This document shows, piece after piece, positions 6,560 through 46,080 of a DNA stretch of 64,000 nucleotides. The stretch covers positions 1,364,001 through 1,428,000 of the forward strand of contig NIVC01000031.1 of NCBI GenBank assembly GCA_002269645.1, read 5' to 3'. A model generated the notes under the pieces. That model was not told the DNA's origin, made no database searches, and worked only from the letters and a program-made list of their open reading frames with translations. The DNA is from Macrostomum lignano. Taxonomy: Eukaryota. Made by a program: the position numbers and the translations under genes. The first letter of the stretch is position 1. Each line of letters begins with the position of its first letter.

Positions 6560-6709
6560 CAGTTAGTTGTTTAGTTAGTTAGTTAGTTAGTTGTTTAGTT
6601 AGTTAGTTAGTTAGTTAGTTAGTTGTTTAGTTAGTTAGTTAGTTAGTTAGTTGGTTAGTTAGTTAGTTAGTTAGTTGGTTAGTTAGTTAGTCAGTTATTT
6701 TGTTTGTTT

Positions 6710-6767
<58 letters not shown>

Positions 6768-6785
6768 CAGTTATTTTGTTTGTTT

Positions 6786-6845
<60 letters not shown>

Positions 6846-7116
6846 AGTTAGTCAGTTAGTTAGTTTAGTTAGTTTAGTTAGTTAGTTAGTTAGTTAGTTT
6901 AGTTAGTTAGTTAGTTAGTTTAGTTAGTTAGTTAGTTTAGTCAGTTAGTCAGTTAATCAGTTAATTAGTTAGTTAGTTAGTTAGTTAGTCAGTTAATCAG
7001 TTAATCAGTTAATCAGTTAATCAGTTAGTTAGTTAATCAGTTAATCAGTTAATTATTTAGTTAGTTAGTTAGTTAGTCAGTTAGTTAGTCAGTTAGTCAG
7101 TTAATCAGTTAATTAT

Positions 7117-7157
<41 letters not shown>

Positions 7158-16184: not shown

Positions 16185-16850
16185 AATTCAGTGATATGGA
16201 TTGGGATTTGAGTGTTTTGGATTGGGATTTCAGTGTTATGCATTGGGATTTGAGTGTTTTGGATTGGCATTTCAGTGTTATGGATTGGGATTTGAGTGTT
16301 TTGGATTGGGATTTCAGTGCTATATATTGGGATTTGAGTGTTATGGATTGGGATTTCAGTGTTATGCATTGGGATCTGAGTGTTATGGATTGGGATTTCA
16401 GTGTTATGCATTGGCATTTGAGTGTTATGGATTGGGATTTCACTGTTACAGATTGGGATTTCACTGTTATAGATTAGGATTTTACTGTTATAGATTGGTA
16501 TTTCACTGTTATGGATTGGGATTTCACTGTTACAGATTGGGATTTCACTGTTATAGATTAGGATTTCACTGTTACAGATTAGGATTTCACTGTTACAGAT
16601 TGGGATTTCACTGTTACAGATTGGGATTTCACTGTTATAGATTAGGATTTCACTGTTACAGATTGGGATTTCACTGTTATAGATTAGGATTTCACTGTTA
16701 CAGATTGGGATTTCACTGTTATGTTATCGATTGGGAATTCAGTGTTATGCATTGGGATTTGAGTGTTATGGTTTGGGATTTCACTGTTACAGATTGGGAT
16801 TTCACTGTTATGGATTGGGAATTCAGTGTTACGTATTGGGATTTCAGGAC
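16185..16850. repeat. 21-bp minisatellite downstream of the ERO1 stop
   Basis: Unit TGGGATTTCACTGTTACAGAT and variants. It produces the 7-aa-periodic spurious ORFs in the track. Confidence 0.95.
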
Positions 16851-16911: not shown

Positions 16912-19900
16912 TCACAGATCAACCCGAAACCCCCTGCCACTCGCAGCCCATCCGTTGCTGCTGAGCAGGCCTTTGAACTCTTCAAGCGAGTAGATGCTCT
17001 CAGACAGGCGGCCCAACGCGTTGAACAGAGTCACAATCTCGTGCCTGCGCAGGTACTGCGGCAGGTTGGGGCTGAACAGCACCTTGAGCGCGGTGCCCAA
17101 CCCGGCAGTCTGCACCTTGCCCCACAGCCGGCACTTGTCGCATCCAACGCAGTCCATAATCCGGGTGATGTTGAAGAACTTCTCCCTGATCTCCGATTTC
17201 AATCGGATCTTGTCGCGTTCGCGAAACAGCTGCGACTCGTCAAAATGATCCGGGAACTGTTCGACCTGGTCGAGAATGTCGCTCACTAGCTGGGCCACTT
17301 CAGCGTCATCAGACTCGCTGCCAGTGAAGAACTTGGCCCTCCTCAGCACCGGAGCAGCTTTAGCCAGAGCTCTCAGCTCGGCTAGGAATGTGAAATGCAG
17401 ATTCTTCAGCCTGACCGGGCCCTGGGGCTCGAACTCCGGATGGAATCGAACTAGGAATTCGGTAACATTCGGACCCCAGTTCTGGGTGCCCATCAGGCGG
17501 TCCTGAGGCCCGAGCAGCAGGTACTTGTGCGACAGGTGCGTGTTGATGCTGGTGTGCAGGCCTGAGATCAATCGGTGATAGACTCGGATCTCCAGGCACT
17601 GGCTCTGGGCTGTTAGTTTGAAAGGGGTGCGAATGCAAGTCTGCCTGAGTAACAAGCTTATGTGTATAACAAAATATACCAGACAGTTTAGCAATTAAGA
17701 ACAACGGATCACCAAACATTATTGCTGATTATTCGCGAAAGTTTATCAAGAAAATGTTCACCTACCCATGAATCTCCCTCATCTACCCCATAAACCTTCC
17801 TAATCTACCCAAGAAACTCACTAATCTACCCAAGAAACTCACTAATCTACCCAAGAAACTCACTAATCTACTGAAGAAACTCCAATCTAACCAAGAAACT
17901 CTAATCTACCCATGAATCTCCCTCATCCAACAAATAATCTCCTTCATCCATTAAAGAATCTCCCTCATCCACCAAATAATCTCCCTCCACCACCAAAGAA
18001 ACTCACTCATCTACCCATGATCTCCCTCATCTACCCCATGAATCTCCCTCATCTACCCCATGAATCTCCCTCATCTACCCCATGAATCTCCCTTATCTAC
18101 CCATGATTCTCCCTTATCTACTCCATAAAACCCCCTCATCCACCAAAGAATCTCCCTCATCTGTTGATCCCATTAGTATCCCTCATCTACCCATGAATAT
18201 CCCTCATCTATCCCTGAATCCCTGATTCCCATCAGATCCTCTGAAGTGAAAACTCAATACCATGTACCATGCTTCGACCTGTACTTGAACAAAGACGGAA
18301 CTAATTTTGTAAAAATAAGCATAATCATTTTTGTGATCAGCAATACCACTAAGGACTAACGATCATTTGAGAATAATTTCAGCGATTGTAAATTGAAACA
18401 AATAAACTGCTAAGAGTTTCTAAATTTTTATAAGAATCACCGCTAATAATTACCAGCTGTCAAAGGTACTATAAGCGTACTATAGCATTTCTTACTTACT
18501 TGAAGATATTGCATACTCTAACTCATAATTATTATTAAGAATAAAACCCAATCCAAGTTTTTTCCTAAGCATTTATATAGCAGACTTTATTTATGGCGTC
18601 ACACACCTGTTAGCGTTTATATAAATAAATGCTTTGTATTAATCGAAATATTAAAACAGTATTTTAACTTCAATTCCTTACTCATTTTCAGTGGTCTCAA
18701 AAGCTGATTAACTGAAATTGAATTAAACAAATTTTCAAAAAAAATTTTGAAATAATTCAGGATCCGGAACTTACTACTCCTTAGAAAAGCAGTTAACCCC
18801 AGAAGACAAAAAATCAATTAACCGAAACACACTCACACAACTCGGCAACAAAACTATTGGAAAACAATTATAAAAAACACGAATGGAATGTAGCTCATAG
18901 TTTCGGGTGAGGGGGGGGGTTGTAATTATAAACATATGCGCATATTTTGGTTTGGATCCAAACTGCATTTACCGTCGGCGTCCCCAGCCAGTCCTGCAAC
19001 AACACGGCGCAACCGGAATAGCATAAAATAGTCAAATATTAGTTGAAAATTCAGAGCAGTGCAATAACTGCCGTACTCATAAATTATTGCATAGGTGGTG
19101 CTTGTTCACGCGAATTGTAGGGATCAATACACACACATTGATACAACTGGGACTGGGAGGTTGGGATCTGGAAAGAGAATTTGATTAAAAAATAGGGAAG
19201 AAAAACTGGCAAGAGAATGTTAAGGGGACAAGGAGTGAGGAGAGAAAAAAGGAGTGGCTATTAGTATAACAGCGGAGGAGGGGGTAAAGCTGGGGGGAGG
19301 GTAAAGCGGGGAGAGGGTAAAGCTGGGGAGAGGGTAAAGCGGGGGAGAAGGTAAAGCTGGGGAGAGGGTAAAGCGGGGGAGAGGGTAAAGCTGGGGAGAG
19401 AGGGTAAAGCGGGGGAGAGGGTAAAGCGGGGGAGAGGGTAAAGCGGGCGAGAGGGTAAAGCGGGCGAGAGGGTAAAGCGGGGGAGGATAAAGCAGAGGAA
19501 GCTAGCATACTTTAAAGTGGGTTGGGGAGGGTGAGAAAAGAGTAGAGAATTGAAAAGCCTCACACAGGTGAGCAAACAAGTTCAACAGCAAACAAATGCG
19601 TTATCAGAGCACCATTTACAATAAACTAACCAACAGTTCTCATCTGCGCTCCGCCGGGCAGCAGGGCGCTAGCCGGATCATTGAAACAATTCTCCTCATA
19701 GATGCTGCGCCAGATTTTGTGAGCAGCCTCGCCCCTGTAACCGGTGTACCGCTCCGGATTGCGCAGCAGATCAACGTACTGCGAAGAATTGCCGATATCG
19801 TCATCCCACTCGCAGAATTGCAACAAAGAATCGTCGTGATCTGACCATTTGACAAATGCTGCCTGACTGGTTGGCGACAGAGTCTCATCCAGCTCGCCCA

Positions 19901-22900
19901 GGTTGCTGTCTGACCCAGCGGGCACCTGGTCGCCAGCTGACTGCGAGCTGTGGCAGTTAGCGGCATCATCAGACATGGATTTGACATCCCGCATCCCAGG
20001 CGGTACTTCGTCATTCTGACAGCCATCAACGTGACAATGTCGCATAGCGCAGAGCCAGTTGGCCTCCCAAAACGGACATTTGGCTTTTAAATTGACGCGA
20101 ACGTAACGAAAATAATTGCGTTTTAATAGGGCTTGTAGGCGAGGATAGAGAATGCGATTGTTGAATTCTGCTACGGATTTCAGCTCGCATGCGCAATCGT
20201 CCACGGGGCCGTTTAGCTGCATTGGGGAATTGCGGGAAGTTATAATCTCCATTTTATATAAATATAAATTATATTCATACAATTGTCAATATATAGGGTA
20301 ATAGTAGGAACATGAATTACAAAACTAATATCTAGACTCTAATGGCGCTGAAATCTAGCCTTCAATGGGGCTGAAATCTAGCCTCCAATGGCGCTCAAGT
20401 CTATCCTCCAACGGCGAAAAAATCTAGCCTTCAATGGAGCTACAATCTAGCCTCCAATGGCGCTGAAATCTAGCCTCCAATGGGGCTGAAATCTAGCCTC
20501 CAATGGCGCAATGGCGCTGAAATCTAGTCTCCAATGGGGCTGTAATCTAGCCTCCAATGGGGCTGTAATCTAGCCTCCAATGGGGCTGAAATCTAGCCTC
20601 CAATGGCGCTGAAATCTAGCCTCTAATGTCGCTGTAATCAAGCCTCTAATGGCGCTGAAATCTAGCCTCCAATGGCGCTGAAATCTAGCCTCCAATGTCG
20701 CTGTAATCTAGCCTCTATTGTCGCTGTAATCTAGCCTCTAATGGCGCTGAAATCTAGCCTCCAATGGCGCTGAAATCTAGCCTCTTATGGCACTAAAATC
20801 TACTCTCCAATGGCGCTAAAAATCTAGCCTCTAATGGCACTAAAATCTAGCCTCCAATGGCACTAAAATTTAGCTTATGGAATTATCTTTTACTGTATCA
20901 TATAGTAAGAAAATAAAGAATCATAGCAACAGTTTAAGCTGTCACCCATTAACATTTATTTATTGCGTAAGAATTGCTAAGACAACATTTATCTTAACCT
21001 TAACACCTATTAACGCTAGTACACATGCATATGGCATTAAAAATCATATGAAAATCATATCAATAAAACTATCAACACAACTATCAAATATCTGTTGCTT
21101 GAATCTACAATCTTGGGGACGTATGAATTCCAAGTTACCATATTGCCTATGTTACCTAGTTTATTTATAGCATACTTATACATATATAGTTTTATAATAA
21201 TTTTATAGTTTTATAATACTGTAGTGAGCCGCTAGTTTATGGTTAGGCGTCGCCCTTGTCAACTGTTCCCTCGCCTTCGCCCTGGGTTGCTGTCTGCCGC
21301 TGGTCAGCTTCCCACCCCCTTTTGTCTGCCTGTCCCCTTTGTTGCCCGGTTGCGTCTCTGTTCTCAGCCCTCAGCCTCTCGGCTGTGGGCTGTCTCTGTT
21401 TCGTTTCCGTCCTGTTTTCCCTGTCTTATGAGCCAGTCACATGACAGCTCTTGCGTTCTTCGAGTCCCAAAGTGCAGTAAAACATGTTTACTGCACTCGT
21501 TGGCCCTGTTTACTGGGTGAGTCACATGCTTTCAGTCTCCTCCCTTCTCTAGGGAGAGGAGTGACTCATGTTGCTAAAGATAGCAACTGAGTCACAGCTA
21601 TGTGCACTCTGCCGGGGGACCCTCAAGTGACGTCAGTTCTAAAAATAGAACGAGTCACGAGGTCTTCCGCACGCTTGTACCCTGCCTAAGACTCTCAAGT
21701 GACGTCAGTTCTAAAAATAGAATGAGTCACGAGGTCTTGTGCGTGGGTGTTTCCTGGCTATAAATAGGAGGCCTCTCCCCCTTGTTTCCGTCAAGGAGTT
21801 GTCTTCCCGAGACTGCAAGTTAAGAGCTTCCAGTTTTCTGCAATCCTGAGTTCCCAGTTTTTAAGTCTAAGGCTGAGTGTCAGCCCTTCTGTGTGCGTTA
21901 AGTTCTCTTTTAATTGGTCTGTCTGAGACTCTACTAAAGCACACCCCAAGCCTTCGAGAGGCTAACTCAGCCCTCCATGTACCAACCAAGCCCGGCAGGT
22001 GCTGCTGACGAGATGCCTTGTACGTTGAACTGCAAATCTGCACCTGGGGCTGAGTTCGTTGACTTTGTTATTTTGTTCCGACGGGAAGCTCACCTCATCA
22101 AAGGCCAAGACCTGAAAGAACTGGTGGCAGCACTACCTACGCTACTAAGAGTTTAGAAGGCTTCCGAGTGAGAAGACGGAGAGCCCAAGTCACTGCGCTG
22201 GACAGCAGGACAAACACAGGTACAACAATACCTAAAAATACTTATAACACCCACAAAATGTAAAAACCTTTAATAATTAAGTTTTAATTAATAGTTAAGA
22301 AAGCTTTAAATTTCACAAAAATTTTAGTACAAATTGGAAATCTCTTGAGCAAACTTGGTGCATTTGGTACTAAATTGGATAGTTAGATAAATATATTAAT
22401 CAACAATAATTATAGGAATTTTATTGATTTCCTTAAAATATAATTATTTGCATTTTTAGAAGTTTTGTTGTTTTAAATACAATAACTTTTAATATACCTT
22501 TTAGACTTCGGATTTGTCAAAAGTGAGTTCAAATTTGTCAGCATTTGCAAAACTGTATAGCACTTAAGGGGAAGAAAATGAGTGTCTATGGTAAATTTTT
22601 AGAAAGTGACTTCAACTTTGTCTAAGTAAGTGAAATTTGTCTGTGCAAATACAGCCTGATCAGAAAAAGTGTTTGCTTTGTCCATGGTAAGAAAAGAAGT
22701 TGTCTATGGTAAATTTAAGTAAGAAAGTAGGTGATTTTTGTCTGGAAAAGTAGCCCAATGTCTTGAAATCTTCATTTCATGCTTTGATTGTTGTCAGAGA
22801 TGCCCTACATGAGAATTTTGTCTGTGGATCACTCTGGACTCGTGCGATGTTTTCAACAAGGATGAGACTAAAGACAACTTGCAATTGAACTGGATATCAA

Positions 22901-27989: not shown

Positions 27990-28270
27990 ACACAGTATGA
28001 GGAGAGAAAAGAAGGGAGAGAAGAGAGCAGATCGAGAGCTAAGAAAGAGAGGGGGAAGGGAGAGAAAGAAGGGAGACCAGACAGAAGAGAGAGGAAAGAG
28101 AAAATGATCGAGACGGAAGAGAGCACAGAGGGGAGAGAATAGGAAGAATCTCAAGAGGGGGCCCAGAGAGAGAGAGAGAGAGAGTAGAGAGAGAGAAGAG
28201 AGGTCACGGCGTGTTTAAAAAAATTTGAATGTGGGCTACCGGTTTCGAGCCTCTGGGCTCTTCGTCAGGC

Positions 28271-28334
<64 letters not shown>

Positions 28335-28350
28335 GAGAGAGAGGAGATAG
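27990..28350. repeat. GA-rich low-complexity region with (GA)n microsatellite
   Basis: Purine-only runs; long (GA)n at 28274-28335. Confidence 0.9.
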
Positions 28351-28508: not shown

Positions 28509-29190
28509 TCAATTCCGACGCAGATACACTTCTTTATTCAGCGTAGAAATCAAGCACGGTATTTGGCGGCCATTTGTTAGTTTTTGGACTTCGTCAATCA
28601 CTCTCGCCGTTAAGTCTAGAAGCCCTGCTCTGCGCGATCGGTCGGCGAGACAGACTTTGAGCACGGACTGGACAAACGGGCTACCAAGTTGCGAGTGCCG
28701 TTCAGACAAGCCACCCTCGGCTGTGCTGTAAAAGTACAGGCAGTCCTCCGGACTTACGATTTCAACAGCAACCTCCGGCTGCTGTGTGGCTGAAACTTGC
28801 CTGCACGATTGTACTAAAAACAGCTTAGGTTTGTTTTTGAGACCTTCCAGTTGTCGAAATCTTCTAAAGAGGTCGATCTCAAGGTTAAGATAAAAACCAT
28901 CTGACGATTCAATGTGGCCTAGATAACCGTGAGACATGACAAGCAATAGAAACACGTCGCACTCTTGAAGCTCTCTATCTTCAAAGCCGATAGACAGCAT
29001 AGACAACCTTCTGGCATTTTTCATTGTCTGAGGACTGTGAAAGCCAAGTTTAAGAAGCATATCAACCACCTTCGTGTCGTCGAGTTGTGCTCCGCCTCTC
29101 GTGGATGCGTCTGAGCCATACCCAAATCTAACATTGTTAATGACAATTGCTAAGCGTCGGTGATTGTCTGTTCTGATTTCATATCGGGGC
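28509..29190 (-). other. Caspase (peptidase C14A) domain of the fusion gene
   Basis: LAIVINN, RGGAQLD, LGF, VMSHG (His codon 28929-28931), KPKLFLVQSCRQ (Cys codon 28803-28805), YSTAEG..SER...GSPFV and QIP..ISTL.K.VYL. Confidence 0.92.
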
Positions 29191-29535
29191 GGTTCAATCG
29201 GAGATGGAGGATCGCCCTGGTTGCCCTCGCCTGAGCCGGATCCACTGCCACTTTCACCGCCGGCGTTCTGCTCGGAATTGTTGCCAGTTGCGCCGCTTCC
29301 GTTCTCATCACCACTGCCTTCTGGTGGCTGCGACGGAGGTTCGGAGATCGATGCGTCCGCGGCAAACTTTCGAATGCTTGGGAAAAAATCAACAGAAGTT
29401 TATTTCAAAGGGTTTGATTTTCGTCAGGTAGTATGTAAGTGTTTGTTTATAGTATTATTATTTGTATACTTACGAACATTGTATTATAAGAAAACAAAAT
29501 GAGACAAACCATCAACAATCAGAGAGAGAGAAAGG

Positions 29536-29576
<41 letters not shown>

Positions 29577-32500
29577 ATTCAAACCATCAACAATCAGGTT
29601 AAGGTTGATAGGTTCAGACTGGAAGCCAGTTGGAAAGCACCCAGTGGAATACAGTTTGTCGATAACCAGACAGTGAAAGTCTTCTGATATGTCGTTATGC
29701 GTGAGAAACTTACCACGTTCTAATATAATCAGCGCACTCTTGATGACCAAAAAACTCGGCAGATTGCAGTGCAGTACGCTCGTACTCGTCCACAGCCTGC
29801 CAGTCTTCAAGGTGTTTTAGAAATGGTGTGAGCTTTACTATCACACTCTTGTGACCTCGTCTGGCTGCCCAAATTAGTGGCGTTGCTATGCCAGAGAGTG
29901 AACCGAAACTAGAAGTTTCTGCATTGTCGCTTCCTATGCCAGGAGCTGCACTGGCGCCATTTTGAAGCAGTAAGTCCACAATATTCACTCGACCACACCG
30001 GCACGCATGCGTCAGTGCGGTGCTGCGGACCAGATCCTGCAAGTTGAGGTAAATATATAGGAATAATAACTACTAAACTAGCCTAACAAATAACTCTACC
30101 TTTATCAACTTATATTTACCATTTTGTTTAGATCAATGGAAGGCTGTTTAGCCATTAAATCCACCACTCGATCATGGCCTTCAACTACGGCTAGCATCAG
30201 AGGTGTTAGGCCGCTGTTATCCACTCGATTGATAATTGATGAAGGTGAGGATGCAGTGGCTTGAAGCAGCTGCGCAAAAATTTCGAGCCGTCCACGTTTA
30301 CAAGCCCACCACAGGGCAGTTCGACCGAAGACATCAACAGGCTGGTCAGACACAATTGAAGTGGCTGCAGCACCCGACAGCAGAGCTTCAAGACATGCGA
30401 CGCTGTTTCGCTTGACAGCTATCGTTAGCAGGGTTTCGTCGAACGGCTCGAACTGGCGTTGATGGGCCAGCGGTTCGTTGTGACCGGCGAGTCGTTGGCA
30501 GCGAAGCAGTAGGTACTCTTCGGACCAGTCGTTTGGATACCTGCGAAAATTCGAATGAAGGAGCTCAATTAGTTTTTTTTCAAATTAGTATAATTTTTGT
30601 TGGTTTCGAGAGTGGCTGATAAGTATACTCAACAACAGCTAAATTGCCCCTTACTCAATGCAAAGTGTTAGAAAGCATGTGAAAGAATTATGAGCATTCA
30701 AAAGGGCCGTCACTCGTTACGTCACCCTATGATAAGGAACCGGTTGTCGAACTCTTGGGCCAAACCAGTATAACAAATGTTCAGCGTTCTGAGAGGCATT
30801 CTGCTAAATTCTTTTCTTTATGAAATCCAAATCATGCTCGATGAAGTTCATCTTGGGAGGACTTCACGGTCCAGTTAAGATGGGGTACCTTCAAACTCTA
30901 CCTAAATCGAAAAAGACATTGTTTAACTTCCTGTGCCACGTGACAGCATGAGTTACATGAACATGGGGTTAAGACAAGGGGATTATTTCTTGCTGACGAC
31001 TATAGCTACAGAGTGGCGAATCAGATATCCATAATGTTTCCGACTTTCGTACCGAAGTGTGCAATACCTGGATCGGTTCGCGCATGTACATATACAGTAT
31101 GTGATTTTTTTTACTTATACATGTAAATGTAGCACAAAACTAAATGTGGCTATTAACACGAACTCACTCAATTCGGTTCTCATCGGCAACTTCAATTGCA
31201 ACTCGCGCTCCGTCTTCAAAAATCGCAGATTTGCCAATGCAGAAGTCCGTATGCTGTTTATAGTTGCTGTAGTGAGCCAAAGCTAGCAATTCAAGATAGT
31301 CGAAATCCGTCTGCATAGCCGCAAACCAGCTGTCCAACCTGTGATTGGAAACAATTTCGGCTTGCAGACTCCAGCACAGGCAGCGGAAATTCACATAAAG
31401 ATGTGTAGAGACCTTATTTGTCCTTTGAAACGAGAATAAGGATTGAGTGAATGTCGGAAGATAATGAAACTTGGGCTCTTCGTCAAACGGCAAACAGAAT
31501 TGGTAGTGTTGATTCTCAAAGTTTTCGATTCTATTTTCTTCCAACCATCTTGTCCATCGGATTAACACTCTCTCAGCCTCCTTGAACTTGTTCGCTCTCA
31601 AGGAAAGCATCACATTCAGACAGGTGCTAACACAGACGCACGATTCTGGCAAAGTTGACACGCAACGCATCAGCTTCTCTTCGCTACCGAAGTCTTCCTT
31701 CGATTCTAACAGCTTCAAGCATTGAAAAACAAAGTTGAAAATTTTTACTGGATGCTCGAAATTCGGTAGGTTGCCTGTCGGGATGATCATCTCTGACGGG
31801 CGCATTAGAGGCAGCAGAGTGAAGAGATTACAGCGAAATTCAGCCGGTCGAACGCACTCGACAATCATGCTAACAACTGCTTCGATTTCCCCAACGAATT
31901 CTTGAAGTAGCTGCCTAACCTTTTCTTTGGTGCGCTGAAAGTCGCCTCCAAGACCGGCATTTCGGAATTGAAGCATCACATCCGGTATGAAGAAGTGCGG
32001 CATGCAGATGTCCGATGAAGCATTAGAATCAAAGAACTGCAGCATCAAACTGAGCGACTCTTGTAGTAGCTGGATCAAGTGCGTAGGCTGCCAGCATTCG
32101 ATATTGAGCCTGTGCTTCTCCATCATGTGAAATAGCAGCGTCTTCGCGTGATAGCTGCTCAAGCCAGTAGTTGAGAATCGATTTGGCAGCAGTTCTACAA
32201 AAATGAATTTGATCAAGACGAATAGCTGGCCCTGAACTGTGCACAGGGACTGCATAATTTTCCTTTCCTGATTGCTAAAGCTGATCTGTAGCTCTCTAGT
32301 TGAGCTGGTTGCAATCGTTCTGATCAGGTGCACAGGCTCCGCGCTTGCTGCCGGCAGGAGCAAGCGGACTCGATCCGCACGATAGCAGCTACAACAGCGG
32401 AAGGCGTGACATGTTGTCTGTTGCGGCCGGGTGCTGCAGCCTTTTGTTACGATGGGAACTTGGCCTGAAAATTAATGGTGGGTGGTAATATGATGGAAAA

Positions 32501-35500
32501 ACATAGAAACTGGAATCTCGGCTTGAGTCTGCTTGTGAAATTAACGCACATAAGGGCTAATCCCCAATTAATTCGGCACTATGAAATGTACAAGTTCCTG
32601 ATAATTAGAAAGTCAGGGCCGCTGTACACTGCTATGCGCATGACTGCGTACGTATCCGCGCGCTTGTGTGCCTGCTCAGGGGAGTCGGTGGAATGGGCAG
32701 CAATGCCTTTGTGTTGCTTTGCTTTATTTATGACACGTATGAGAACAGCAACCAGTTTAATAAATATTTCTCCATTATTTTTTTGACCCGATTTCCGCAA
32801 GCAATGATGAGTTTTGCACTGTCCATATGGTGCCAATGGTGCTATCTTTAACCCCACAGGAGCGGAATTCCTATTTAGTAATTTTGTGATAGAATTCTGT
32901 GTGAATGCTTGCAGGCATGAGTGCGTGCCTGTGTACATTGTCCATGCGCGCGCTGGCGTAATGCGGGCAGTATTGCCTTACCGATGATTGTGGGACCATG
33001 CGTTGCGCTAGGGTGGCCACTAACTTCCTGCGAGTGTTCATTTTTGATAGCTCGTAATAGGGTCCTCTAGGTCCAATACAATTTGGAAGGCAGTCCCCGC
33101 TCCCCGCCAAAGTATTTAGCTCAGCTAGTATAATGGTTAATACCAGGATGTGTTCTACGAAAATTTGCCCAATACATGTAGCTAGCTCGTACTAACCTAT
33201 GCGCGATTGCAAATGAATGCGACCGTTCTTCACCGCTTCCAGCTGCTGCTCTTCATCGTCAGCAAACTCGCACTGGCAGTCGTCAGCCAAGTGAAATATT
33301 TTCTTCTTACCTCCGACTAAAACAGTCCAGTTAATGTCATTTGTGCCTAAACGGTCACGCTTAGCCGCTGCATCAGTTGGTGTTTTCAGTGCCAAATTTC
33401 CGTAGCCCCAGCCCTCGATGCAGCTGCCAATGAGTAGCCTGTGCTCAAGCGACTGCTCCTGTGCTGCCGCTTCCAGATTAGAGGCAAGCGCTTGCTGCTT
33501 GATCGCGGCTGACTTGGTGAATCCAGCCTGGTTAAGCCGCTGGTGCAGGTCAAGGCTCAGTTCTTCTGGCGTCGAACTTCTGAAGGGTTTTTTTATTGAG
33601 AAAATTTTTTCAAAGGCAAGTGTCGTGGAGAGATCCCCGTAAAGAGTCGCCTCCAACAAAATTTCGAGTTTAAGACAGCTCAGGTATAAGCTCGTTTCTT
33701 ACTCATCTTCCGTGGCAGTTTCAACAAACGCTTCCGTCAAACTCGAGCTAAAATGCAAATGATCGCTTTTTAAATTGGAATTAATAATAAGTTATAAAAA
33801 TGAATTAGAATGTCACCTCTCTAAATTGCGATAGTCTAACAAGCGTAACACTTCTCGTTGTCCAGCCATTTCAGCCATCTGCGCACACGTTAAGCCCTGG
33901 CGGTCTCGGTGATGGACGTTGGAGCCACTGTCAATCAAAGTCTTGGCGATCTTCTCGTTGCCAGACAGAAACGCTCGAGCCAAAGCAGTTCGACCCAGGT
34001 TGTCTGCGGCCTGCACTGATGCTCCGCTTTCTAGCAGGCTTTTTACAATCTCGTGACGATCCTCATCAGTAGCTAGCATCAGTGCGGTACTGCCTTTTTC
34101 GTCTCTCTGATCCACCTGGTTGAGATGGGGTACAATCAAAACGGCCAGGGCTGAGTAGCCGAATGAGATGCACTCTTCAAACAGTTGGATTCTGTGTAGC
34201 TGCTTCATGTCGTCCAGTAGTCTTGTAATCGTTTGCTCACTCTCGGCAGCAATGGCGCAGTTGGAGAGACCTCGCAACTGCCATTCAGACGGTTGGAGTT
34301 TACCAGCGCGGCTATCGAAATCAAAGACGCTCAACACGCTGGCTTTCGGTGGTAGTTGCTGCATCAACAGGTTGAAACTGCCACTTAAAGCTGCAGCTTT
34401 TATAGCATCAGAACGGCACAGCTCGGCAATGTCTCTGCTAGAGGTCAACTTCACCATCTCGGCAACATTTGCCAAGCCGGTGACGGCTGAAAGCTTCACC
34501 AGCTCGACAGTGCACAAATCGCGAAATTCTATATTACGAATCATCGATAAGGCATTAACAGCAGCTTCAGTATTTTCGGCATGAACAGCGCTTACAGAAA
34601 CATCATAGAAGCCTCGTTCTCGATTGTCCTGCTCCGATATCAGTTGCAGAACACTCAGTGCAACAGCCCACTCTTGAGCTGTTGAAGCTAGCTTAGCCAC
34701 CTCAGTAATGCAAGTAAGCTGGACTTCATACTTGCAAAGTTCGAGTACGAATTTATCTGCCTCTGCCCACAGCTGAGCATTTGCGGCGCCGACTGCCAAT
34801 TCCTTGAAGCAGCGATCTTTAACGTCCTGGTCACGAATTTTCTGCCCGAAACGATTAGCCTCGATCCATTTTTTAGCAGCACAACAAGTTAGTGCAATAT
34901 TCGAATAACACTGGTCTCTCAAACAACCGTCAGTAATTTGCTTTGCTAAATTATCGGCATCTTCCCAGTCTTCCCAGGTAGCGGACATAGTGGCAGTATC
35001 ACTATAGCAATAGTTTTTAGTTGCGCAATCAGAAATTTTGCCTGCGACTTCCTCGGCAACGTCGTATCGACGCCTGCCCAAGGCAAGTTTAGCTAACTCT
35101 CTCAGGCAGCTGTTGCGCAATTCCGAGGAGCGTTGAATTTCGCCACACAATCGGACGGCTTGCCCCCAATTGGCCATGGATGCGGCGCATATGGCAGCCT
35201 CTTCGCAGCACCGATCCTGCACGCTAGCATCCGAGACTAAGTTCAGTAGACTTTTATGCGTCTCCCAGTCCTCAAGGCTGGCCGCGGTTCGACTCAGTTC
35301 AATACAGCACGAATCCTTCCGCTTTGAATTGTCGATAATTTGCACGAGTTTTAAGACTTCCTCCGCGTGTTTAAGCTCATTGTCAGTCGTCGCTATGCAA
35401 GCGCAACAGTCGTCTTTGAGTCGCTGATCGGTAATCGTACTGACCAACGGAGTAATTGAATTCCACTGGTCAACTGCTGTGCACAAGCGAGCGGCCTCGC

Positions 35501-36815
35501 TGAGGCACCTGTCTTTGACGGTTTTATCAGCAATCGATTGTGCAATGGTGTTTGCGGCGTCAATATCTTTATTCTTAACTCGGGTGCACGTGACGTCGTA
35601 TCGACAGTCGTCCTGTATAGAAACGTCAGTAATTTCATTGACTAGCTGAACAAACGCTTTGAATTCATGTTTGCTTCCGGCAGCTTTAGCCAGCTCTTTG
35701 AAGCAGCTGTTTCTTCTGCTTATGTCAGCAAGGCCGCCGAGAAATTCGACAGCTACAGACCAGGCCTCTTTCTGGCCAGCCTGCTTAGCAATGCAGATTC
35801 GGCATTCGTCTTGCACTTTCTGGTCTTTGATGAAGCGGACAGCTGCACCAGCGTTATCCCAGCGTTCCCAAGCGGCTGCCAGGACGGCACAGTCGCTGCA
35901 GCTCTGGTCCACCGCTGCTTTGGACATGGTTGGTACTAGCTCATTAGCAAGTGGCTGAAACTGATCCTTGACAACGGCTGTCTCAAGCACCTTCAAGCAG
36001 ACTGAATCTCGAGTCGACTGCTCGACTATGCTAGCAGCCAGGCTAGCGGCGATCTGCCATCTGCCAGATTCAGCTGCCCTCGGAGCCAATTCGGAGCTGC
36101 AATCCTCCTTGATTTTTTGTTCTTCGATGCCAACGAAAAGGCGCTCGACCATTTCCCAGTGACCGGAGACGGAGAGGAAACCAGCGACTTCGCGACTGCA
36201 TCGGTCGCGAGATTCTGGATTTTGAATTTTAGCTACTAGCCTAGCAGCAAGCTCGGCGCGTCCCTCTCCTGATGTAATTGTAGCGTCACAGGCAGCAGCA
36301 GCCGCAGTGGCCGATTTGTGCAAGCAATCGTCTTGCATATTTTGATCGGCGATAATGCAGGTGAACATATCCGCCACATCACCGTTACAAGCGCTAGCCG
36401 CAAACTTGGCCAAGTCGCTGCAGACAGTCTGGCGAAGGCGCTCGTTCATCACTTGAAGCACTAAATTCTCGGCTTCTCGCCAGTCCTGCCACATGGCCGC
36501 GCACTTTGCAGCCTCTGCAGCACAAATTTCTCTAACTTTAGAGTCTTCGATAGCATGCAGAAGCTGTTGAACCAGCCGCCAGTGTCGATTAGAAGCGAAC
36601 AATAGTACCGCCTCCGAGCACCATCGGTTTCGATCAGGAGACAGTTTGAGCAGCTCAGCTAGTAACTGGGGCTGCATGTCTACGCCATACTCAGCAGAGA
36701 ATTCGCGGCAGCTCAAATCAACATTGCCACTTTTTAAACGCCCGGCTAAATCTGAAGCCTGGGAGTCCGGAGTCCGCTGACGATTTTCATCGACTTGGGA
36801 GTTTTGATTGCCCAT
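28509..36815 (-). CDS. Predicted 2111-aa multidomain protein: helical-repeat solenoid, ankyrin, cGAS-like (Mab-21) NTase fold, ankyrin, caspase; exons 36815-33817, 33747-33703, 33579-33197, 32464-31168, 30540-30120, 30036-29714, 29376-28509
   Basis: All six introns are GT-AG with matching phases (2,2,1,2,0,2). Exon total is 6336 nt with no internal stop. The phase-0 junction rebuilds an ankyrin repeat (IDLNKM|DLVRSTALTHAC). The last exon adds the caspase N-terminal motifs (YEIRTDNHRRLAIVINNVRF...RGGAQLD) in frame with the listed 186-aa ORF. Each domain call is stronger than the single-transcript model. Confidence 0.8.
29714..30540 (-). other. Second ankyrin-repeat block of the fusion gene (about 5-6 repeats, exons 5-6)
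   Basis: ETLLTIAVKRN, GRTALWWACKRG, GLTPLMLAVVEGH, STALTHACRCG, ATPLIWAARRGH, ERTALQSAEFFGH. Confidence 0.9.
31168..33579 (-). other. cGAS-like/Mab-21 nucleotidyltransferase-fold domain plus helical extension (exons 3-4)
   Basis: N-lobe LLIGSCIEG...NDIN. C-lobe LQISFSNQERKI, LSSYHAKTLLFHMME, W...LIQLLQESL..ML and CMPHFFIPD, matching the Mab-21 C-terminal signature pattern. Confidence 0.85.
33817..36815 (-). other. N-terminal 33-aa helical repeat solenoid (about 23 units) plus about 3 ankyrin repeats (exon 1)
   Basis: Consensus I-x-D-x3-[RK]-D-x-C-x3-[LA]A-x2-AA-x4-W-x2-A is visible in the translation. C-terminal GSTALMLA, GRTALARA and GLTCAQMA ankyrin motifs. Confidence 0.85.
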
Positions 36816-39689: not shown

Positions 39690-41513
39690 TCAAAGGAAGT
39701 CGCCACTCAGATTGGAGCCGCTAGGGGCAGCAGCTGCACCCATAGCAGCGGAAGACGCCCCTCCGGAGAACTGCATCGCGTGCATGGAGCTGCGACTGCC
39801 GTGCAAATTGCTGCCAACGCTGGACGCCATCGAAACGCCGTTACCGTTGCAGGTTACCATGGCCACGTGGCGAGCGGCTCCAATTCCGTTACTGTACTGC
39901 TGCTGTAGCCTCGAATCGTGCCGTATATGCGCAGCAGGGGAGTTGCTGTACTTGCGCGGTGGCAACGGAGGCGGCGGTCCCTGACGCGGACGGTACTGCT
40001 GCTGCTGCGGCTGCTGCTGCTGCTGCTGCTGCTGCTGGGGCTGCTGCTGTTGCGTCATCTGATGAGGTTGCTGGTAAAGCTGCTGCTGCTGCGGTACCTC
40101 TTGTTGTTGACGACGCTTCTCTCGACCAGCCTCAAGCAAGTCGTCGCAGCTGGTGGCACGGAACGGGCGCGGCGCGGCGGGCACCCCCATGCACTCGGCT
40201 AGGCGAATTCGTGGAGGATTTACAAGTACGAGGCCGCTGTCGTTAGACGAATTGGACTTGCTGTGCTGCTGAAACTGCTGCTGCTGTTGCAGTTTCTGCT
40301 GCTGTTGGAAGTGTGAATGCGCCGGCATGCGCCCAGTTCTCACATAGAAGTAAATATCCTCTACTTCGTCTAGAAGATCGTCAACTTCAAGTGGTTGTTG
40401 TTCCTGCTGTTGAGCCAGTGGTAACACCTGCTGGTCTCCTGGCTGCAGCAAGCATCGCTCCTGAGGCGCCAATTGATTTGTCGCATCGCCAAGATGTCGA
40501 ATTAGATAACGCAGCGCTTCAAATGGATGATAGGACTGTAGAAACTGAGTCACTCTGGTGGAGTGCCGCTCCAACAGCTGAACGTGATGACCGAGCTCTG
40601 ATTCGCCAACTCGAAACGCGTGCTGGTTGAGCATTTCCGGCGTTACCACGAAGAAGCGTTCCGGATTCGATAGCGACGCCAGGAACAGTAGGTCGCCGCG
40701 ATTACACGAAGTCAGACGCAGACTGTGTCGATCGGAGAACGACAACCAGGGCAGAGGAGGCCCGAAAACTGGCCTAACACTGAGTGGGAACTGGAACTTG
40801 CTCAACAAAGACTGCAGCGTGTGTACACCTGAGATGTTTTCAGCTCCCGCCACCGGACTCACAGCGCACTTGTCCTCTAAGTTAAGGAAGACCAGATGAC
40901 CGTTTGTATCGGAGCATTTTACAAGTGGCAGCTCCTTGACTTTCCGATGCTTCTGCACGCGAAATTTGCCACTCTCAATATAGTTGAGCACTGTGCCGGA
41001 TTTAAGCAGACCAGTGCTTTCAGCGCTCAGGTCAAAGTTGCCATTGCCGGCTTTGTTCTTTGCGAATAGGCATTTCTGGTCTTTGCGTAGAAAGACCGAT
41101 TGCGGCTTGTGGCGAGCCACGTCCTTTACGCTGGTCCAGTAGGGAATGGAGCCACCACTCTCGTTGAGAACTTCGAACCAGCCGGTTGAGTAGTCGGTGA
41201 GAATCACTCTAATGCTTTTTTCGTTGCCGCTAGTACTTGAAGACGATGCCGACTGTTTGCTCAACGCGTGATGAGGCATCGATGGCGTTGACTTGGTCTT
41301 GCTCCAGCTGCCTGCCACTAGTTTGCAGTTCCGAACCGCTTTAAGCATGAGCACCTCTTGATTATTCAAGGCGCAGGTGCATTGCTCGCGAAGGCAACGT
41401 ATGCTGATGAGGATGCTGCGATTCGATTCAGCAAGCTCATAGCAGTCGAGCAACTCTTGAAGGCTCTGGGTGTCCCGGCGCCACAGCAGCGAGAATAGGT
41501 TGAGCTCGGACAT
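39690..41513 (-). CDS. CABIT-domain protein (Themis/GAREM/Serrano-like) with Gln/Pro-rich tail, 607 aa, single coding exon
   Basis: ILTDYSTGWFEVL, LKSGTVL, CAVSPV and HTLQSLLSKFQFPLSVRPVFG resemble CABIT motifs. C-terminal poly-Gln and PPPLPPRK (SH3-ligand-like). The long open frame has coding-like composition. Confidence 0.7.
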   Translation of the reverse strand: MSELNLFSLLWRRDTQSLQELLDCYELAESNRSILISIRCLREQCTCALNNQEVLMLKAVRNCKLVAGSWSKTKSTPSMPHHALSKQSASSSSTSGNEKSIRVILTDYSTGWFEVLNESGGSIPYWTSVKDVARHKPQSVFLRKDQKCLFAKNKAGNGNFDLSAESTGLLKSGTVLNYIESGKFRVQKHRKVKELPLVKCSDTNGHLVFLNLEDKCAVSPVAGAENISGVHTLQSLLSKFQFPLSVRPVFGPPLPWLSFSDRHSLRLTSCNRGDLLFLASLSNPERFFVVTPEMLNQHAFRVGESELGHHVQLLERHSTRVTQFLQSYHPFEALRYLIRHLGDATNQLAPQERCLLQPGDQQVLPLAQQQEQQPLEVDDLLDEVEDIYFYVRTGRMPAHSHFQQQQKLQQQQQFQQHSKSNSSNDSGLVLVNPPRIRLAECMGVPAAPRPFRATSCDDLLEAGREKRRQQQEVPQQQQLYQQPHQMTQQQQPQQQQQQQQQPQQQQYRPRQGPPPPLPPRKYSNSPAAHIRHDSRLQQQYSNGIGAARHVAMVTCNGNGVSMASSVGSNLHGSRSSMHAMQFSGGASSAAMGAAAAPSGSNLSGDFL

Positions 41514-43019: not shown

Positions 43020-44500
43020 GAGGGCGTAGAGGAGAGTGAAGAGTAGAAAAGAGATCAGAGAGAAGGGTGGAGTGGGAGGAGGAGGGGAGACAGCGGAGGA
43101 GGGGAGAGGGCAGAGAGGAGAGGAGGGGGCAGAGAAGAGGGGAGAGGAGAGGAGAGGAGGAGAGGGCAGAGAGAAGGAAAGAGGAGAGGAGAGGAGGAGA
43201 GGGCAGAGAGGAGAGGAGACGGCAGAGAGGAGGGGAGAGGAGAGGAGAGGAGGAGAGGGTAGAGAGGAGAGGAGAGGGCAGAGAGGAGAGGAGAGGGCAA
43301 AGAGGAGAGGAGAGGGCAGAGAGGAAATGAGAGGGCAGAGAGGAGGGGAGAGGGCAGAGAGCAGAGGGCAGAGAGGAAATGAGAGGGCAGAGAGGAGAGG
43401 AGAGGTCAGAGGAAGGGAGATGCCAGAGAGGAGAGAGAGGAGGGGGCAGAGAGGAGGGGAGAGGAGAGTAGAGGAGGAGAGGGCAGAGAGGAGAGGAGAG
43501 GAGAGGAGGAGGGGGCAGAGAGGAGGGGAGAGGAGAGGAGAGGAGGAGAGGGCAGAGAGGAGAGGAGAGGAGAGGAGGAGGGGGCAGAGAGGAGGGGAGA
43601 GGAGAGTAGAGGAGGAGGGGGCAGAGAGGAGAGGAGAGGGCAGAGAGGAAATGAGAGGGCAGAGAGGAGGGGAGAGGGCAGAGAGCAGAGGGCAGAGAGG
43701 AAATGAGAGGGCAGAGAGGAGAGGAGAGGTCAGAGGAAGGGAGATGCCAGAGAGGAGAGAGAGGAGGGGGCAGAGAGGAGGGGAGAGGAGAGTAGAGGAG
43801 GAGAGGGCAGAGAGGAGAGGAGAGGAGAGGAGGAGGGGGCAGAGAGGAGGGGAGAGGAGAGTAGAGGAGGAGAGGGCAGAGAGGAGAGGAGAGGAGGGAG
43901 GAGGGGGCAGAGAGGAGGGGAGAGGAGAGTAGAGGAGGAGGGGGCAGAGAGGAGAGGAGAGGGCAGAGAGGAAATGAGAGGGCAGAGAGGAGGGGAGAGG
44001 GCAGAGAGCAGAGGGCAGAGAGGAAATGAGAGGGCAGAGAGGAGGGGAGAGGGCAGAGAGGAGGGGAGAGGGCAGAGAGGAGGGGAGAGGGCAGAGAGGA
44101 GAGGAGAGGTCAGAGGAAGGGAGATGCCAGAGAGGAGAGAGAGGAGGGGGCAGAGAGGAGGGGAGAGGAGAGTAGAGGAGGAGAGGGCAGAGAGGAGGGG
44201 AGAGGGCAGAGAGGAGGGGAGAGGGCAGAGAGGAGAGGAGAGGTCAGAGGAAGGGAGATGCCAGAGAGGAGAGAGAGGAGGGGGCAGAGAGGAGGGGAGA
44301 GGAGAGTAGAGGAGGAGAGGGCAGAGAGGAGAGGAGAGGTCAGAGGAAGGGAGATGCCAGAGAGGAGAGGAGGGGGAGAGAGGAGAGGAGAGTAGAGGAG
44401 GAGAGGGCAGAGAGGAGAGGAGAGGAGAGGAGGAGGGGGCAGAGAGGAGAGGAGAGGAAAGGACGGAGAGAAGAGGAGAGGAAAGGACGGAGAGAAGAGG
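43020..44500. repeat. About 1.5-kb polypurine (GAGAG/GGAGG/GGGCA) low-complexity array with higher-order duplications
   Basis: Almost entirely purine on the + strand. Blocks such as GAGGAAATGAGAGGGCAGAGAGG and GGTCAGAGGAAGGGAGATGCC recur. Confidence 0.95.
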
Positions 44501-45114
44501 GAAAATCCATTTGATTGGAAACGTTGGGTAGTTTTTCTAATTGACTTTTCTCACAATGAGCGAGCATGAGGAGAAACGAAAAGCTCGAATTAGGAAGGCG
44601 AACAAGAAAGTTTTTTTGTGCTCACCAATTGGGACAGTCAGATGCCAGATGTGAAATTGTGTTTCAAGGAAAAAAGTGTCCTCAGCAGCTCAACTCAGCC
44701 TCTCGGCCTCAGGCTCTAGCAGTGTTGGCATTTGCCGTGCTTCAGAGTTGAGAGTCGCATGAACCAAATGAATGAAGCCTGAATCGAATTACCTCAATGG
44801 CAAATATCGACTGCCAGGGACTCAGGAAGTTGGGAAGAGAGAGACAGAGCTCAATAGATGGACCTCATGGAGTCAGGGGTTTATTTTGACCCGAAAAAAA
44901 GCTTTAACCAAACGAAACATAAGATTCTTTTTCTACACTGTTTCCAAATTCACTTCTTCCTTCCGTGGTTGGCCTAAGAATAAGAATTCGCGAATGGGGG
45001 TCTAAAAAACCAATAGTAACCTAATTACTGGACCGGCTTGCTTTGGGCCGCTTTTTACTCCTAGATACGGGATGTTATTCAGGGTAGCAGCGCTCACTGA
45101 TTAAGAATCAGGGA

Positions 45115-46080
45115 GGGTAAGGGTAGCGGTACTCACTGAAGGATCAGGGAGGGTAGCGGGATGCTCATTGCTCACAGAAGGATCAGGGAGGGTAGCGGCG
45201 ATGCTCATTGCTCACAGAAGGATCAGGGAGGGTAGGGGCGATGCTCATTGCTCACAGAAGGATCAGGGAGGGTAGGGGCGATGCTCATTGCTCACAGAAG
45301 GATCAGGGAGGGTAGGGGCGATGCTCATTGCTCACAGAAGGATCAGGGAGGGTAGCGGCGATTCTCATTGCTCACTGAAGGATCAGGGAGGGTAGCGGCG
45401 ATGCTCACAGAAGGATCAGGGAGGGTAAAGAGTTGTGGTGCTCACTGAAGGATCAGGGAGGGTAACGGCGATGCTCACAGAAGGATCAGCCGATCAGGGA
45501 GGGTAGCGGCGATGCTCACAGAAGGATCAGCCGATCAGGGAGGGTAGCGGCGATGCTCACAGAAGGATCAGGGAGGGTACGGGCGATGCTCACAAAAGGA
45601 TCAGGGAGGGTAAAGGGTTATGGTACTCACTGAAGGATCAGGGAGGGTAGCGGCGATGCTCATTGCTCACAGAAGGATCAGGGAGGGTAGCGGCGATGCT
45701 CATTGCTCACAGAAGGATCAGGGAGGGTAGCGGCGATGCTCATTGCTCACAGAAGGATCAGGGAGGGTAGCGGCGATGCTCATTGCTCACAGAAGGATCA
45801 GGGAGGGTAGCGGCGATGCTCATTGCTCACAGAAGGATCAGGGAGGGTAGCGGCGATGCTCACAGAAGGATCAGGGAGGGTAAAGGGTTGTGGTGCTCAC
45901 TGAAGGATCAGAGAGGGTAACGGCGATGCTCACAGAAGGATCAGCCGATCAGGGAGGGTAGCGGCGATGCTCACAGAAGGATCAGCCGATCAGGGAGGGT
46001 AGCGGCGATGCTCACAGAAGGATCAGGGAGGGTAGCGGCACTCACTGAAGGATAAGGGAGGGTAGCAGCACTCACTGAAG
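45115..46080. repeat. 40-bp minisatellite
   Basis: Unit GATGCTCATTGCTCACAGAAGGATCAGGGAGGGTAGCGGC with deletion variants. Confidence 0.93.

Follow-up and report, generated by a model that had tools for sequence, protein, structure and literature searches.

The prevailing view of cGAS-like receptors (cGLRs) is that they are almost always stand-alone enzymes, which signal to STING via diffusible nucleotides; caspases, for their part, are held to need death-fold adaptors or NACHT/NB-ARC platforms. In the free-living flatworm Macrostomum lignano, a protein family with ankyrin fusions is already listed among the cGLRs, five of its members have been cloned, and cGLR-ANK (ankyrin), cGLR-TPR, cGLR-death-domain and tandem cGLR fusions have all been described (Li et al. 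2023). Ankyrin-prodomain (ANK) caspases were first seen among platyhelminths in Schistosoma (Lee et al. 2014, cited in PMC11463336). They are proposed to be initiators that are recruited via ankyrin-mediated interactions, and they form a clade that is sister to the DED caspases; they have been reported from parasitic flatworms only, as absent from free-living ones, and M. lignano is listed only for a caspase with a kinase prodomain (PMC11463336). Here we describe an M. lignano gene, BOX15_Mlig026614g1, that joins a cGLR-like module to an ankyrin-caspase unit within one protein of 2111 residues. It lies in a stretch of 64,000 nucleotides (hereafter, the window) that covers positions 1,364,001 to 1,428,000 of contig NIVC01000031.1, assembly GCA_002269645.1. 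Our reading, to which we assign a probability of roughly 0.6, is that the cGLR-like part is a pseudo-cGLR, i.e., a sensor or scaffold that activates the caspase by induced proximity, and not a cGAMP-type (cyclic GMP-AMP) synthase. The details of this reading are far less certain.

The gene is on the minus strand, with a CABIT-domain gene on one side and ERO1 on the other. An earlier examination of the window from its letters alone (the sequence-only reading) had joined separately listed open reading frames (ORFs) through six GT-AG introns into a single coding sequence (CDS). We enumerated every GT...AG pair of the six proposed intron lengths between the ATG at 36815 and the stop codon at 28509, and exactly one combination of introns keeps the frame open. 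This unique solution, with a CDS of 6336 nt and 2111 residues, is identical to the transcript-derived GenBank model: the entry 'hypothetical protein BOX15_Mlig026614g1 [Macrostomum lignano]' matches our 2111-residue product at 100% identity over 100% of the length. The M. lignano annotation was built on transcript evidence only, from StringTie/TACO assemblies of RNA-seq reads and a de novo transcriptome; transcripts were split wherever a trans-splice or poly(A) site had been detected by experiment, and TransDecoder was used to call the ORFs (PMC5730564). The gene is real and transcribed, and its splice model is the one that the transcripts give. The features of the gene are as follows.

28509..36815, minus strand: whole gene, seven coding exons, CDS of 6336 nt, 2111 residues (GenBank BOX15_Mlig026614g1, Macrostomum lignano)
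36815-33817, 33747-33703, 33579-33197, 32464-31168, 30540-30120, 30036-29714 and 29376-28509, minus strand: coding exons 1 to 7 (2999, 45, 383, 1297, 421, 323 and 868 nt)
33816-33748, 33702-33580, 33196-32465, 31167-30541, 30119-30037 and 29713-29377, minus strand: introns 1 to 6 (69, 123, 732, 627, 83 and 337 nt), all GT-AG
36797..36815, minus strand: start codon, in the context ataaaATGG; N-terminus MGNQNS(Q)
34341..36647, minus strand: about 23 tandem helical repeats of 33 residues, residues 57-825 (autocorrelation peaks at 33, 66 and 99)
33837..34208, minus strand: first ankyrin block, residues ~870-993, directly 5' of the nucleotidyltransferase (NTase)-like module and kept in paralogs
31836..33704, minus strand: Mab-21/cGAS-fold (cGLR-like) module, residues 1015-1352, split by introns 2 and 3
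33338-33330, minus strand: codons of D1096-I-N1098, the acid pair, with DxN instead of DxD
32417-32415, minus strand: codon of T1159, in place of the third Asp
30465..31835, minus strand: family-specific, mostly helical extension, residues 1353-1600, after the Mab-21 C-lobe; kept in paralogs, no Pfam match
29737..30428, minus strand: second ankyrin block, residues ~1613-1815, in exons 5 and 6, with one repeat split by the phase-0 intron 5
29175..29357, minus strand: low-complexity linker rich in Gly/Ser/Asn/Glu, residues ~1830-1890, from the second ankyrin block to the caspase
28524..29159, minus strand: caspase (Peptidase_C14) domain, residues 1896-2107 (Pfam PF00656, E 2.8e-27, profile positions 1-233 of 233)

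Three junctions had been singled out for checking by the sequence-only reading (33817/33747, 31168/30540 and 29714/29376), and all are canonical GT...AG. It had also been claimed that one junction rebuilds an ankyrin repeat and that the last exon restores the N-terminal motifs of the caspase. Both statements hold: the intron-5 junction, between M1715 and D1716, is inside an ankyrin repeat, and exon 7 supplies the strand RLAIVINN...TRGG that is missing from the listed ORF of 186 residues. Conventional start sites from which the ankyrin-caspase or caspase part could be translated separately were not found. The first in-frame Met of exon 5 is inside the ankyrin block and that of exon 7 is past the first caspase strand; with no in-frame ATG before the ankyrin or caspase domains in these exons, separate conventional genes would not be translatable.

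The 45-nt micro-exon is the only internal exon whose length is a multiple of three, so that the loss of any other would break the frame. Bases 2-4 of intron 1 (33748-33816, minus strand) form an in-frame TGA. If this intron is retained, translation would stop immediately, which accounts for the ORF of 1000 residues, which is limited to the repeats and the first ankyrin block, in the list of ORFs. Retention of intron 1 and frame-neutral skipping of the 45-nt exon 2 are plausible sources of regulatory isoforms. The N-terminal sequence MGNQNS fits the PROSITE-type consensus for N-myristoylation (Gly2, Ser6), and this fit suggests that the protein may be anchored at, and work at, a membrane.

The C-terminal domain is a caspase by identity, as the sequence-only reading had it. 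Beyond its full-length Peptidase_C14 match, it can be aligned over its whole length with human caspase-3 structures (residues 45-275; E 8e-15), and R1916 (in STRGG), H1972 (MSHG), C2014 (QSCRQ) and R2049 (SERHSQLGSPF) are the equivalents of caspase-3 R64, H121, C163 and R207. The catalytic His-Cys dyad is kept, as H1972 and C2014. In caspase-3, R64, Q161 and R207 are the residues of the S1 pocket that confer specificity for Asp at P1. Their equivalents are also kept, namely R1916 (STRGG vs. TSRSG), Q2012 (corresponding to Q161) and R2049 (SERHSQLGSPF vs. SWRNSKDGSWF). Going by these residues, the caspase is apparently catalytically competent and Asp-specific. Pfam searches of the full protein (E<=1) and of its N-terminal and central parts (E<=10) revealed no CARD, DED, Death, PYD, NACHT or NB-ARC domain, in agreement with the sequence-only reading, in which no CARD, DED, death or NACHT domain had been recognised. 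What precedes the caspase is the ankyrin block at residues ~1613-1815 and then the linker, and this arrangement, without CARD or DED, is the one by which the prodomain of an ANK caspase is recognised. A word-indexed query that consisted of only the caspase domain gave no matches.

The central module belongs in the Mab-21/cGAS fold family; as judged from profile alignment and structure prediction, it contains the complete bilobed cage. With Pfam, the Mab-21_C match to the module is just over the cutoff of 24.1 (24.7-26.7 bits). A profile of the family matches the sequences of cGAS crystal structures with an E-value of 7e-6 and Sp-cGLR1 with 0.0045. When a 27-sequence alignment of the family was compared by hhalign with 18 canonical Mab-21+Mab-21_C proteins, the probability was 100% (E 2.4e-42), and the 307 aligned columns run from the spine helix through the Gly-Ser (GS) loop to the C-lobe, i.e., they include both lobes. 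The same 27 sequences led to an AlphaFold2 model of residues 1015-1352 with a mean predicted local distance difference test (pLDDT) score of 87.9 and a predicted template modelling (pTM) score of 0.90. Among 88 matches of this model to the PDB at E<=1e-3 in Foldseek, the best 50 are all MAB21L1, cGAS or Sp-cGLR1, with full-length alignments, template modelling (TM) scores of <=0.58 and E-values of ~5e-7. A prediction for a 612-residue central region with an alignment of five sequences had a pLDDT of 53, with the NTase core below 40, and its Foldseek matches covered the C-lobe only. Profile, hhalign, AlphaFold2 and Foldseek results thus agree on the cGAS-like (Mab-21 fold) module that the sequence-only reading had proposed.

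In the closest paralogs, the N-lobe of the NTase fold contains a cluster of His and Cys residues (window ~33290-33200 and 32440-32380, minus strand; residues ~1111-1170), with the pattern FHL..xC.C followed by C..RP...C.A..CC, in which H113, C118, C154 and C169 (numbering of alignment A1) are invariant. To judge from this pattern, the cluster could be a zinc site that is placed differently from the zinc thumb of cGAS.

Catalytic cGLRs are defined by the motif h[QT]GS X8-20 [DE]h[DE]h X50-90 h[DE]h, which is stated to be essential for the synthesis of second messengers (Li et al. 2023). The module of our protein does not conform to this motif, since it reads LIGS, a 28-residue spacer, D1096-I-N1098-W, 60 residues and Q-T1159-T. 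While G1066-S1067 are kept, an Ile precedes them, the second acid has become N1098 and the third Asp has become T1159. The spacer from GS to the first acid is too long for the 8-20 residues that the motif allows, due to an insertion of eight residues. By comparison, a typical module of the M. lignano family reads MTGS, 20 residues, DIDW, ~60 residues and QDT, and 73 of the 85 family modules that can be aligned at all five key positions have G-S-D-D-D. The only other lineage in which the family is fused to a caspase (see below) is degenerate at the same places, where it has GS, D-M-N and, for the third acid, Ser. In the AlphaFold2 model, D1096 and N1098 (model positions D82 and N84) open a predicted beta-strand at 83-89 (INWTVLV). 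From this position and from the pattern of acid, hydrophobic residue, acid and hydrophobic strand, we presume that they correspond to the catalytic pair E225/D227 of cGAS. As only one of the three metal-binding acids remains and the motif fails, we read the module as a pseudo-enzyme. In descent and in fold it is a cGLR-family member, yet it fails the catalytic criterion; it is best called a pseudo-cGLR, for which no nucleotide synthesis is predicted.

The repeat solenoid of the sequence-only reading is also borne out, in the form of the ~23 tandem units at residues 57-825. In each unit of 33 residues there is a conserved Cys, together with a stretch rich in Ala and a Trp or other aromatic residue, and the region as a whole is acidic (isoelectric point (pI) 5.1) with 5.3% Cys. 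The same repeats are present in family members P0008, P0010, P0014, P0023, P0092 and P0094 (our identifiers), where they precede the ankyrin-cGLR unit. Searches of Pfam, NCBIfam and PDB sequences gave no significant match to them. The best match is to designed ankyrin proteins, in register (GHWEMVERLF vs. GHKEIVKLLL), with an E-value of 0.68; as this is not significant, we do not call the repeats ankyrin. Since their period equals that of ankyrin, they may be ankyrin derivatives that contain Cys and have diverged very far, or else a new class of helical repeat.

With the central module as the profile, an exhaustive search yielded 660 relatives, of which 87 had E<=1e-30; every close relative that was sampled is an M. 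lignano protein. When the full-length protein was used as the query, ankyrin matches dominated, and only the protein itself and unrelated ankyrin proteins were found. A second lineage in which the family is fused to a caspase is represented by BOX15_Mlig018330g1 (P0157, 1444 residues) and BOX15_Mlig012150g1 (P0015, 1099 residues), both with a Mab-21-like module, ankyrin and Peptidase_C14. P0157 is encoded on a different contig and aligns with our protein in a single collinear block (residues 912-2110 of ours vs. 230-1443, 34% identity, E 5e-180), which extends from the first ankyrin block through the NTase-like module, the extension, the second ankyrin block and the Gly/Ser-rich linker to the caspase. 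The equivalent linker in P0157, before its caspase, is rich in G/S/A. We solved the exon structure of P0157 from its locus and found that it too has seven exons. Four of the six introns, introns 3-6, are at the same aligned codon and in the same phase in both genes: intron 3 at codon 1143 vs. 450 of P0157 (phase 1), intron 4 at 1575 vs. 921 (phase 2), intron 5 at 1715/1716 vs. 1051/1052 (phase 0) and intron 6 at 1823 vs. 1146 (phase 2). The first two introns are each in phase 2 and have a micro-exon between them, with a length of 45 nt in our gene and 54 nt in P0157. An intron skeleton that is common to two genes at 34% identity, and that continues through the supposed junctions, makes a chimeric annotation very unlikely, and it implies that the fused architecture is old relative to that divergence. 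The claim of the sequence-only reading that one gene encodes all modules on one chain, in the order repeat solenoid, ankyrin, cGAS-like module, ankyrin and caspase, is therefore corroborated by a divergent paralog with the same intron structure.

The 1099-residue model of P0015 is probably truncated at its N-terminus, or else its 5' part is diverging: the sequence upstream of its annotated start (positions 4506-5168 of its locus, L003) is homologous to the N-terminal region of P0157, with 74% identity by tblastn. Between the two near-identical copies of this paralog, the ratio of nonsynonymous to synonymous substitution rates (dN/dS) is 0.35 (0.27 for linker and caspase, 0.37 for the NTase-like part), a figure that is based on only 54 substitutions and describes the sister lineage rather than our gene. 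We also considered that our gene might be a pseudogene. We reject this in view of its intact ORF of 6.3 kb, its intact caspase residues, the 34%-identical paralog with conserved architecture and introns, and the dN/dS of 0.35 between the copies of that paralog.

The usual architecture of the family is an ankyrin block, a cGLR module and the extension, in some cases preceded by the 33-residue repeats. It is most likely, going by the exon structures and domain orders, that a gene with repeats, ankyrin and cGLR was fused to a downstream gene for a caspase with an ankyrin prodomain, with the join at what is now the phase-2 intron 4, and that the NTase acids were lost after or during the fusion, in both caspase-bearing lineages. 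In a neighbour-joining distance tree, the two lineages are in the same subclade near its base and are not resolved as sisters. A single fusion event is thus only the simplest reading, given the common introns and the common change from D to N. Other family members carry other domains. P0010 consists of WSC, 33-residue repeats, ankyrin, cGLR and RING; P0088 has a P-loop kinase of the AAA_33/zeta-toxin type followed by ankyrin and cGLR; and P0005 and P0013 have tandem double cGLR modules. P0171-P0173 are in the 90% cluster of P0088 and carry the UniProt name 'SPRY domain-containing'. Some of the family models may be chimeric, e.g., P0067, which carries a homeodomain. By analogy, the swapping of effector-like domains within a large lineage-specific expansion suggests a modular family resembling immune receptors.

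A protein of the hard clam Mercenaria mercenaria, XP_053407825.1 (P0123, 1025 residues), has Mab-21 NTase and Mab-21_C domains of the canonical kind, with the GS/D-T-D/D site intact, and at its C-terminus (residues 772-968) a Trypsin_2 serine protease that scores 26.3 bits, just under the Pfam cutoff of 27.6. On this domain assignment, it would be a second, independent fusion of a cGLR to a protease, in another phylum and with a live NTase site.

The analysis establishes how the gene is built, which domains it encodes and with what fold, which catalytic residues are kept, and that the paralog has the same architecture. Beyond this, we infer ligand binding, oligomerisation, protease activity and a role in immunity or cell death as follows. 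The protein would be cytosolic and possibly myristoylated, with a sensing and oligomerising prodomain of ~1890 residues tied by the flexible Gly/Ser linker to the caspase. The repeat array, the catalytically dead Mab-21 cage or both would bind a ligand or partner, and binding would cause the sensor part to dimerise or oligomerise, as a ligand does with cGAS and OAS-type proteins. The caspase domains, brought together in this way, would be activated by induced proximity in the manner of initiator caspases, and would cleave downstream substrates, with cell death or immune signalling as the result. A nucleotide second messenger, STING, a CARD/DED adaptor and a NACHT platform would all be dispensable. 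A bolder version is that the protein is a one-chain innate 'sensor-executioner', i.e., a cGLR that has abandoned nucleotide signalling and in which a ligand, via the cage or the repeats, directly activates the attached initiator caspase; it would achieve pathogen-triggered death without STING, death folds or NACHT, as an independent parallel to the bacterial pairs of NTase and caspase-like protease. We offer this version tentatively and consider it less likely than not.

It is important to consider several points that weigh against the pseudo-cGLR reading. In the databases that were searched, the family was found in one species only, and M. lignano is known for its rampant expansions of lineage-specific families. 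The linkage of the exons rests on the assembly of short-read transcripts, and in M. lignano precursors can be polycistronic and spliced leaders are added in trans. The caspase has QSCRQ in place of QACRG, and we assume it to be active and specific for Asp solely on the strength of residue conservation. The module has a pI of 6.65 (family range 5.8-9.4) and is not basic; a near-neutral module together with acidic repeats gives no pointer to a nucleic-acid ligand. Finally, the lost NTase acids could reflect relaxed constraint on a decaying module, and not a new role as a scaffold.

Four other explanations were weighed. It could be proposed that the cGLR is active and is coupled in cis to the caspase, such that a nucleotide step upon ligand binding controls the fused protease, as in bacterial CBASS (cyclic-oligonucleotide-based antiphage signalling system). 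This proposal would suit the complete bilobed cGAS/Mab-21 cage, the retention of the GS loop and of the first acid, D1096, and the close paralogs with complete sites, which are candidate enzymes for Li et al. 2023. However, N1098 and T1159 have taken the place of two metal-binding acids out of three, the 28-residue spacer from GS to the acid is outside the X8-20 of the motif, the same losses are found in the only other caspase-fused lineage, and mutation of the motif abolishes synthesis in the cGLRs that have been tested (Li et al. 2023). We consider an active enzyme very unlikely. Alternatively, the dead cage might be a receptor that binds a nucleotide, perhaps one made by the intact M. lignano paralogs, and thereby switches the caspase on. 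Nucleotide binding without catalysis is known, as MAB21L1 binds CTP and MiD51 binds ADP, and bacterial defence offers an analogy in its proteases that are activated by second messengers. The solved structures that come closest to our module include MiD51 and CTP-bound MAB21L1, many intact paralogs (PAA93208.1, for example) are encoded in the same genome, and the GS loop and one acid are kept. Against this, the argument is purely analogical, it is an assumption that M. lignano cGLRs make the product, and induced proximity via the repeats needs fewer assumptions, so that we regard a nucleotide receptor as quite unlikely.

The protein might also be a developmental or apoptotic ANK caspase that senses nothing non-self, and in which the repeats and the cGLR-like region provide a surface for protein-protein docking in housekeeping apoptosis, e.g., in the turnover of neoblasts or the germline. 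ANK caspases are a described flatworm clade and are thought to be initiators (PMC11463336), the NTase site is dead, and the neighbouring genes (STI1/HOP, ERO1, SNAP-like and CABIT) do not form an immune cluster. This explanation is unlikely in our view, since the prodomain comes from a rapidly expanded modular family with dozens of paralogs and swapped effectors, which is the pattern of immune receptors, and since ANK caspases were not found in free-living flatworms (PMC11463336). We give the least credence to an artefact of annotation or assembly, in which a cGLR-family gene and an adjacent Ank-caspase gene were joined via a polycistronic precursor and have separate mature mRNAs. Such precursors do occur, as ~7% of the assembled transcripts of M. 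lignano contain multiple genes and trans-splicing is common (PMC5730564). Nevertheless, the frame is open across six introns between exons whose lengths are not multiples of three, exons 5-7 offer no ATG ahead of the ankyrin or caspase domains, and a pipeline that splits transcripts at detected trans-splice sites left the gene as one (PMC5730564). Moreover, the paralog with 34% identity, which is at another locus, is continuous in the same way, and its introns agree in position and phase through the supposed junction.

The genes around the pseudo-cGLR-caspase gene resemble housekeeping genes. They encode STI1/HOP (TPR and DP exons), ERO1 (two exons) and a CABIT protein of 607 residues in a single exon, in addition to a weak SNAP-like exon (PF14938, 23.6 bits, under the cutoff of 25 bits). 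The 64-kb window has no cluster of related immune genes around the gene, and contains neither paralogs nor tandem copies of it. The window is rich in long minisatellite arrays, with periods of 8-40 nt and lengths of 0.3-1.4 kb, and a spike in GC/AT skew is explained by a strongly purine-skewed (GAGGA)n-like array at 43.1-44.5 kb. These features are located as follows.

4576-5118 and 7721-8326, plus strand: segments of neighbouring genes
16912-17694, 19626-20282, 39690-41513 and 51601-52179, minus strand: segments of neighbouring genes
6379-7565, 11236-11952, 16183-16847, 43074-44501, 45103-46064 and 52194-52934: examples of minisatellite arrays
28160-28350: (CT)n tract in the 3' flank of the gene

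If our reading is correct, the Mab-21 cage can be reused in immunity purely as a module for recognition and oligomerisation, and the activation of a caspase can be coupled directly to a pattern-recognition fold. It would also mean that flatworms, which are said to have lost components of extrinsic apoptosis and most cGLRs, invented replacements. The intact and degenerate paralogs form a natural contrast for studying non-catalytic roles of cGLR folds, and the idea is directly testable, as M. lignano is tractable for transgenesis and amenable to RNA interference. Independently of mechanism, the published claim that free-living flatworms lack caspases with ankyrin prodomains is corrected at the level of domain architecture, with at least two lineages in M. 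lignano. As the survey reports no ANK caspase in free-living flatworms, our gene and its paralog were missed there (PMC11463336).

The sequence-only reading did not know this architecture from the literature. Our literature searches, too, turned up no account of a caspase linked to a Mab-21/cGLR fold, nor of the locus tag, and that part of the claim stands. However, the parts have precedents, in the cGLR-ankyrin fusions of M. lignano and in the ANK caspases of flatworms, and since 2017 the protein has been publicly available under the name 'hypothetical protein', with its paralog named only 'Caspase family p20 domain-containing protein'. The combination of pseudo-cGLR and ANK caspase therefore consists of known parts whose joining is apparently unreported.

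The sequence-only reading had also drawn an analogy to nucleotide signalling by CBASS and cGAS. In CBASS, an active NTase is linked by a diffusible nucleotide to a separate caspase-like (Peptidase_C14/CHAT) effector. The likeness is that an NTase fold of the cGAS/DncV type is paired with a protease of the caspase fold in one defence unit. In contrast, our protein has both on one chain with a degenerate NTase (IGS, DIN, Thr), so that the analogy does not carry over directly, and common descent of the pairing is unsupported. Like MAB21L1/2 and MiD49/MiD51, which are scaffolds or adaptors and in some cases bind nucleotides, our module keeps the Mab-21 cage with incomplete catalytic residues. Those proteins, however, are stand-alone, with functions in development or mitochondrial fission, and have no fused protease or repeat arrays; the module is not orthologous to MAB21L1/2 or MiD49/51 and, in our tree, derives from within the M. 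lignano cGLR radiation.

Among lophotrochozoan caspases, unusual prodomains known from sequence only include a Z-DNA/RNA-binding domain in Platynereis, PARP in Lingula and a kinase in M. lignano (PMC11463336). Our protein resembles these in that a module that looks capable of sensing, and is not a death fold, takes the place of CARD or DED. It differs in that no Mab-21/cGLR prodomain is among theirs, and our gene is absent from that survey (PMC11463336). The ANK caspases of platyhelminths are closer in domain architecture, with ankyrin directly N-terminal to the caspase, no CARD or DED, and a flatworm origin. Our prodomain differs in its length of ~1890 residues, which adds the pseudo-cGLR and the 33-residue repeat array.

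The closest relatives of the remainder of the protein are in the M. lignano cGLR expansion (Li et al. 2023), which has the same bilobed fold of NTase core and helix bundle. The five cloned members share with our protein the signatures GFT..RA..Q, GS.aEGWG, RVS.sF.E., GLK.YHAKTL and CMPHFF, as well as the upstream ankyrin block and the helical extension. Because the active-site motif is degenerate, our protein would fall outside the curated cGLR set of Li et al. 2023, and the accessible part of that paper's supplementary domain tables contains no caspase or peptidase term. What our protein adds to the cGLRs of Li et al. 2023 is the C-terminal ankyrin-caspase unit.

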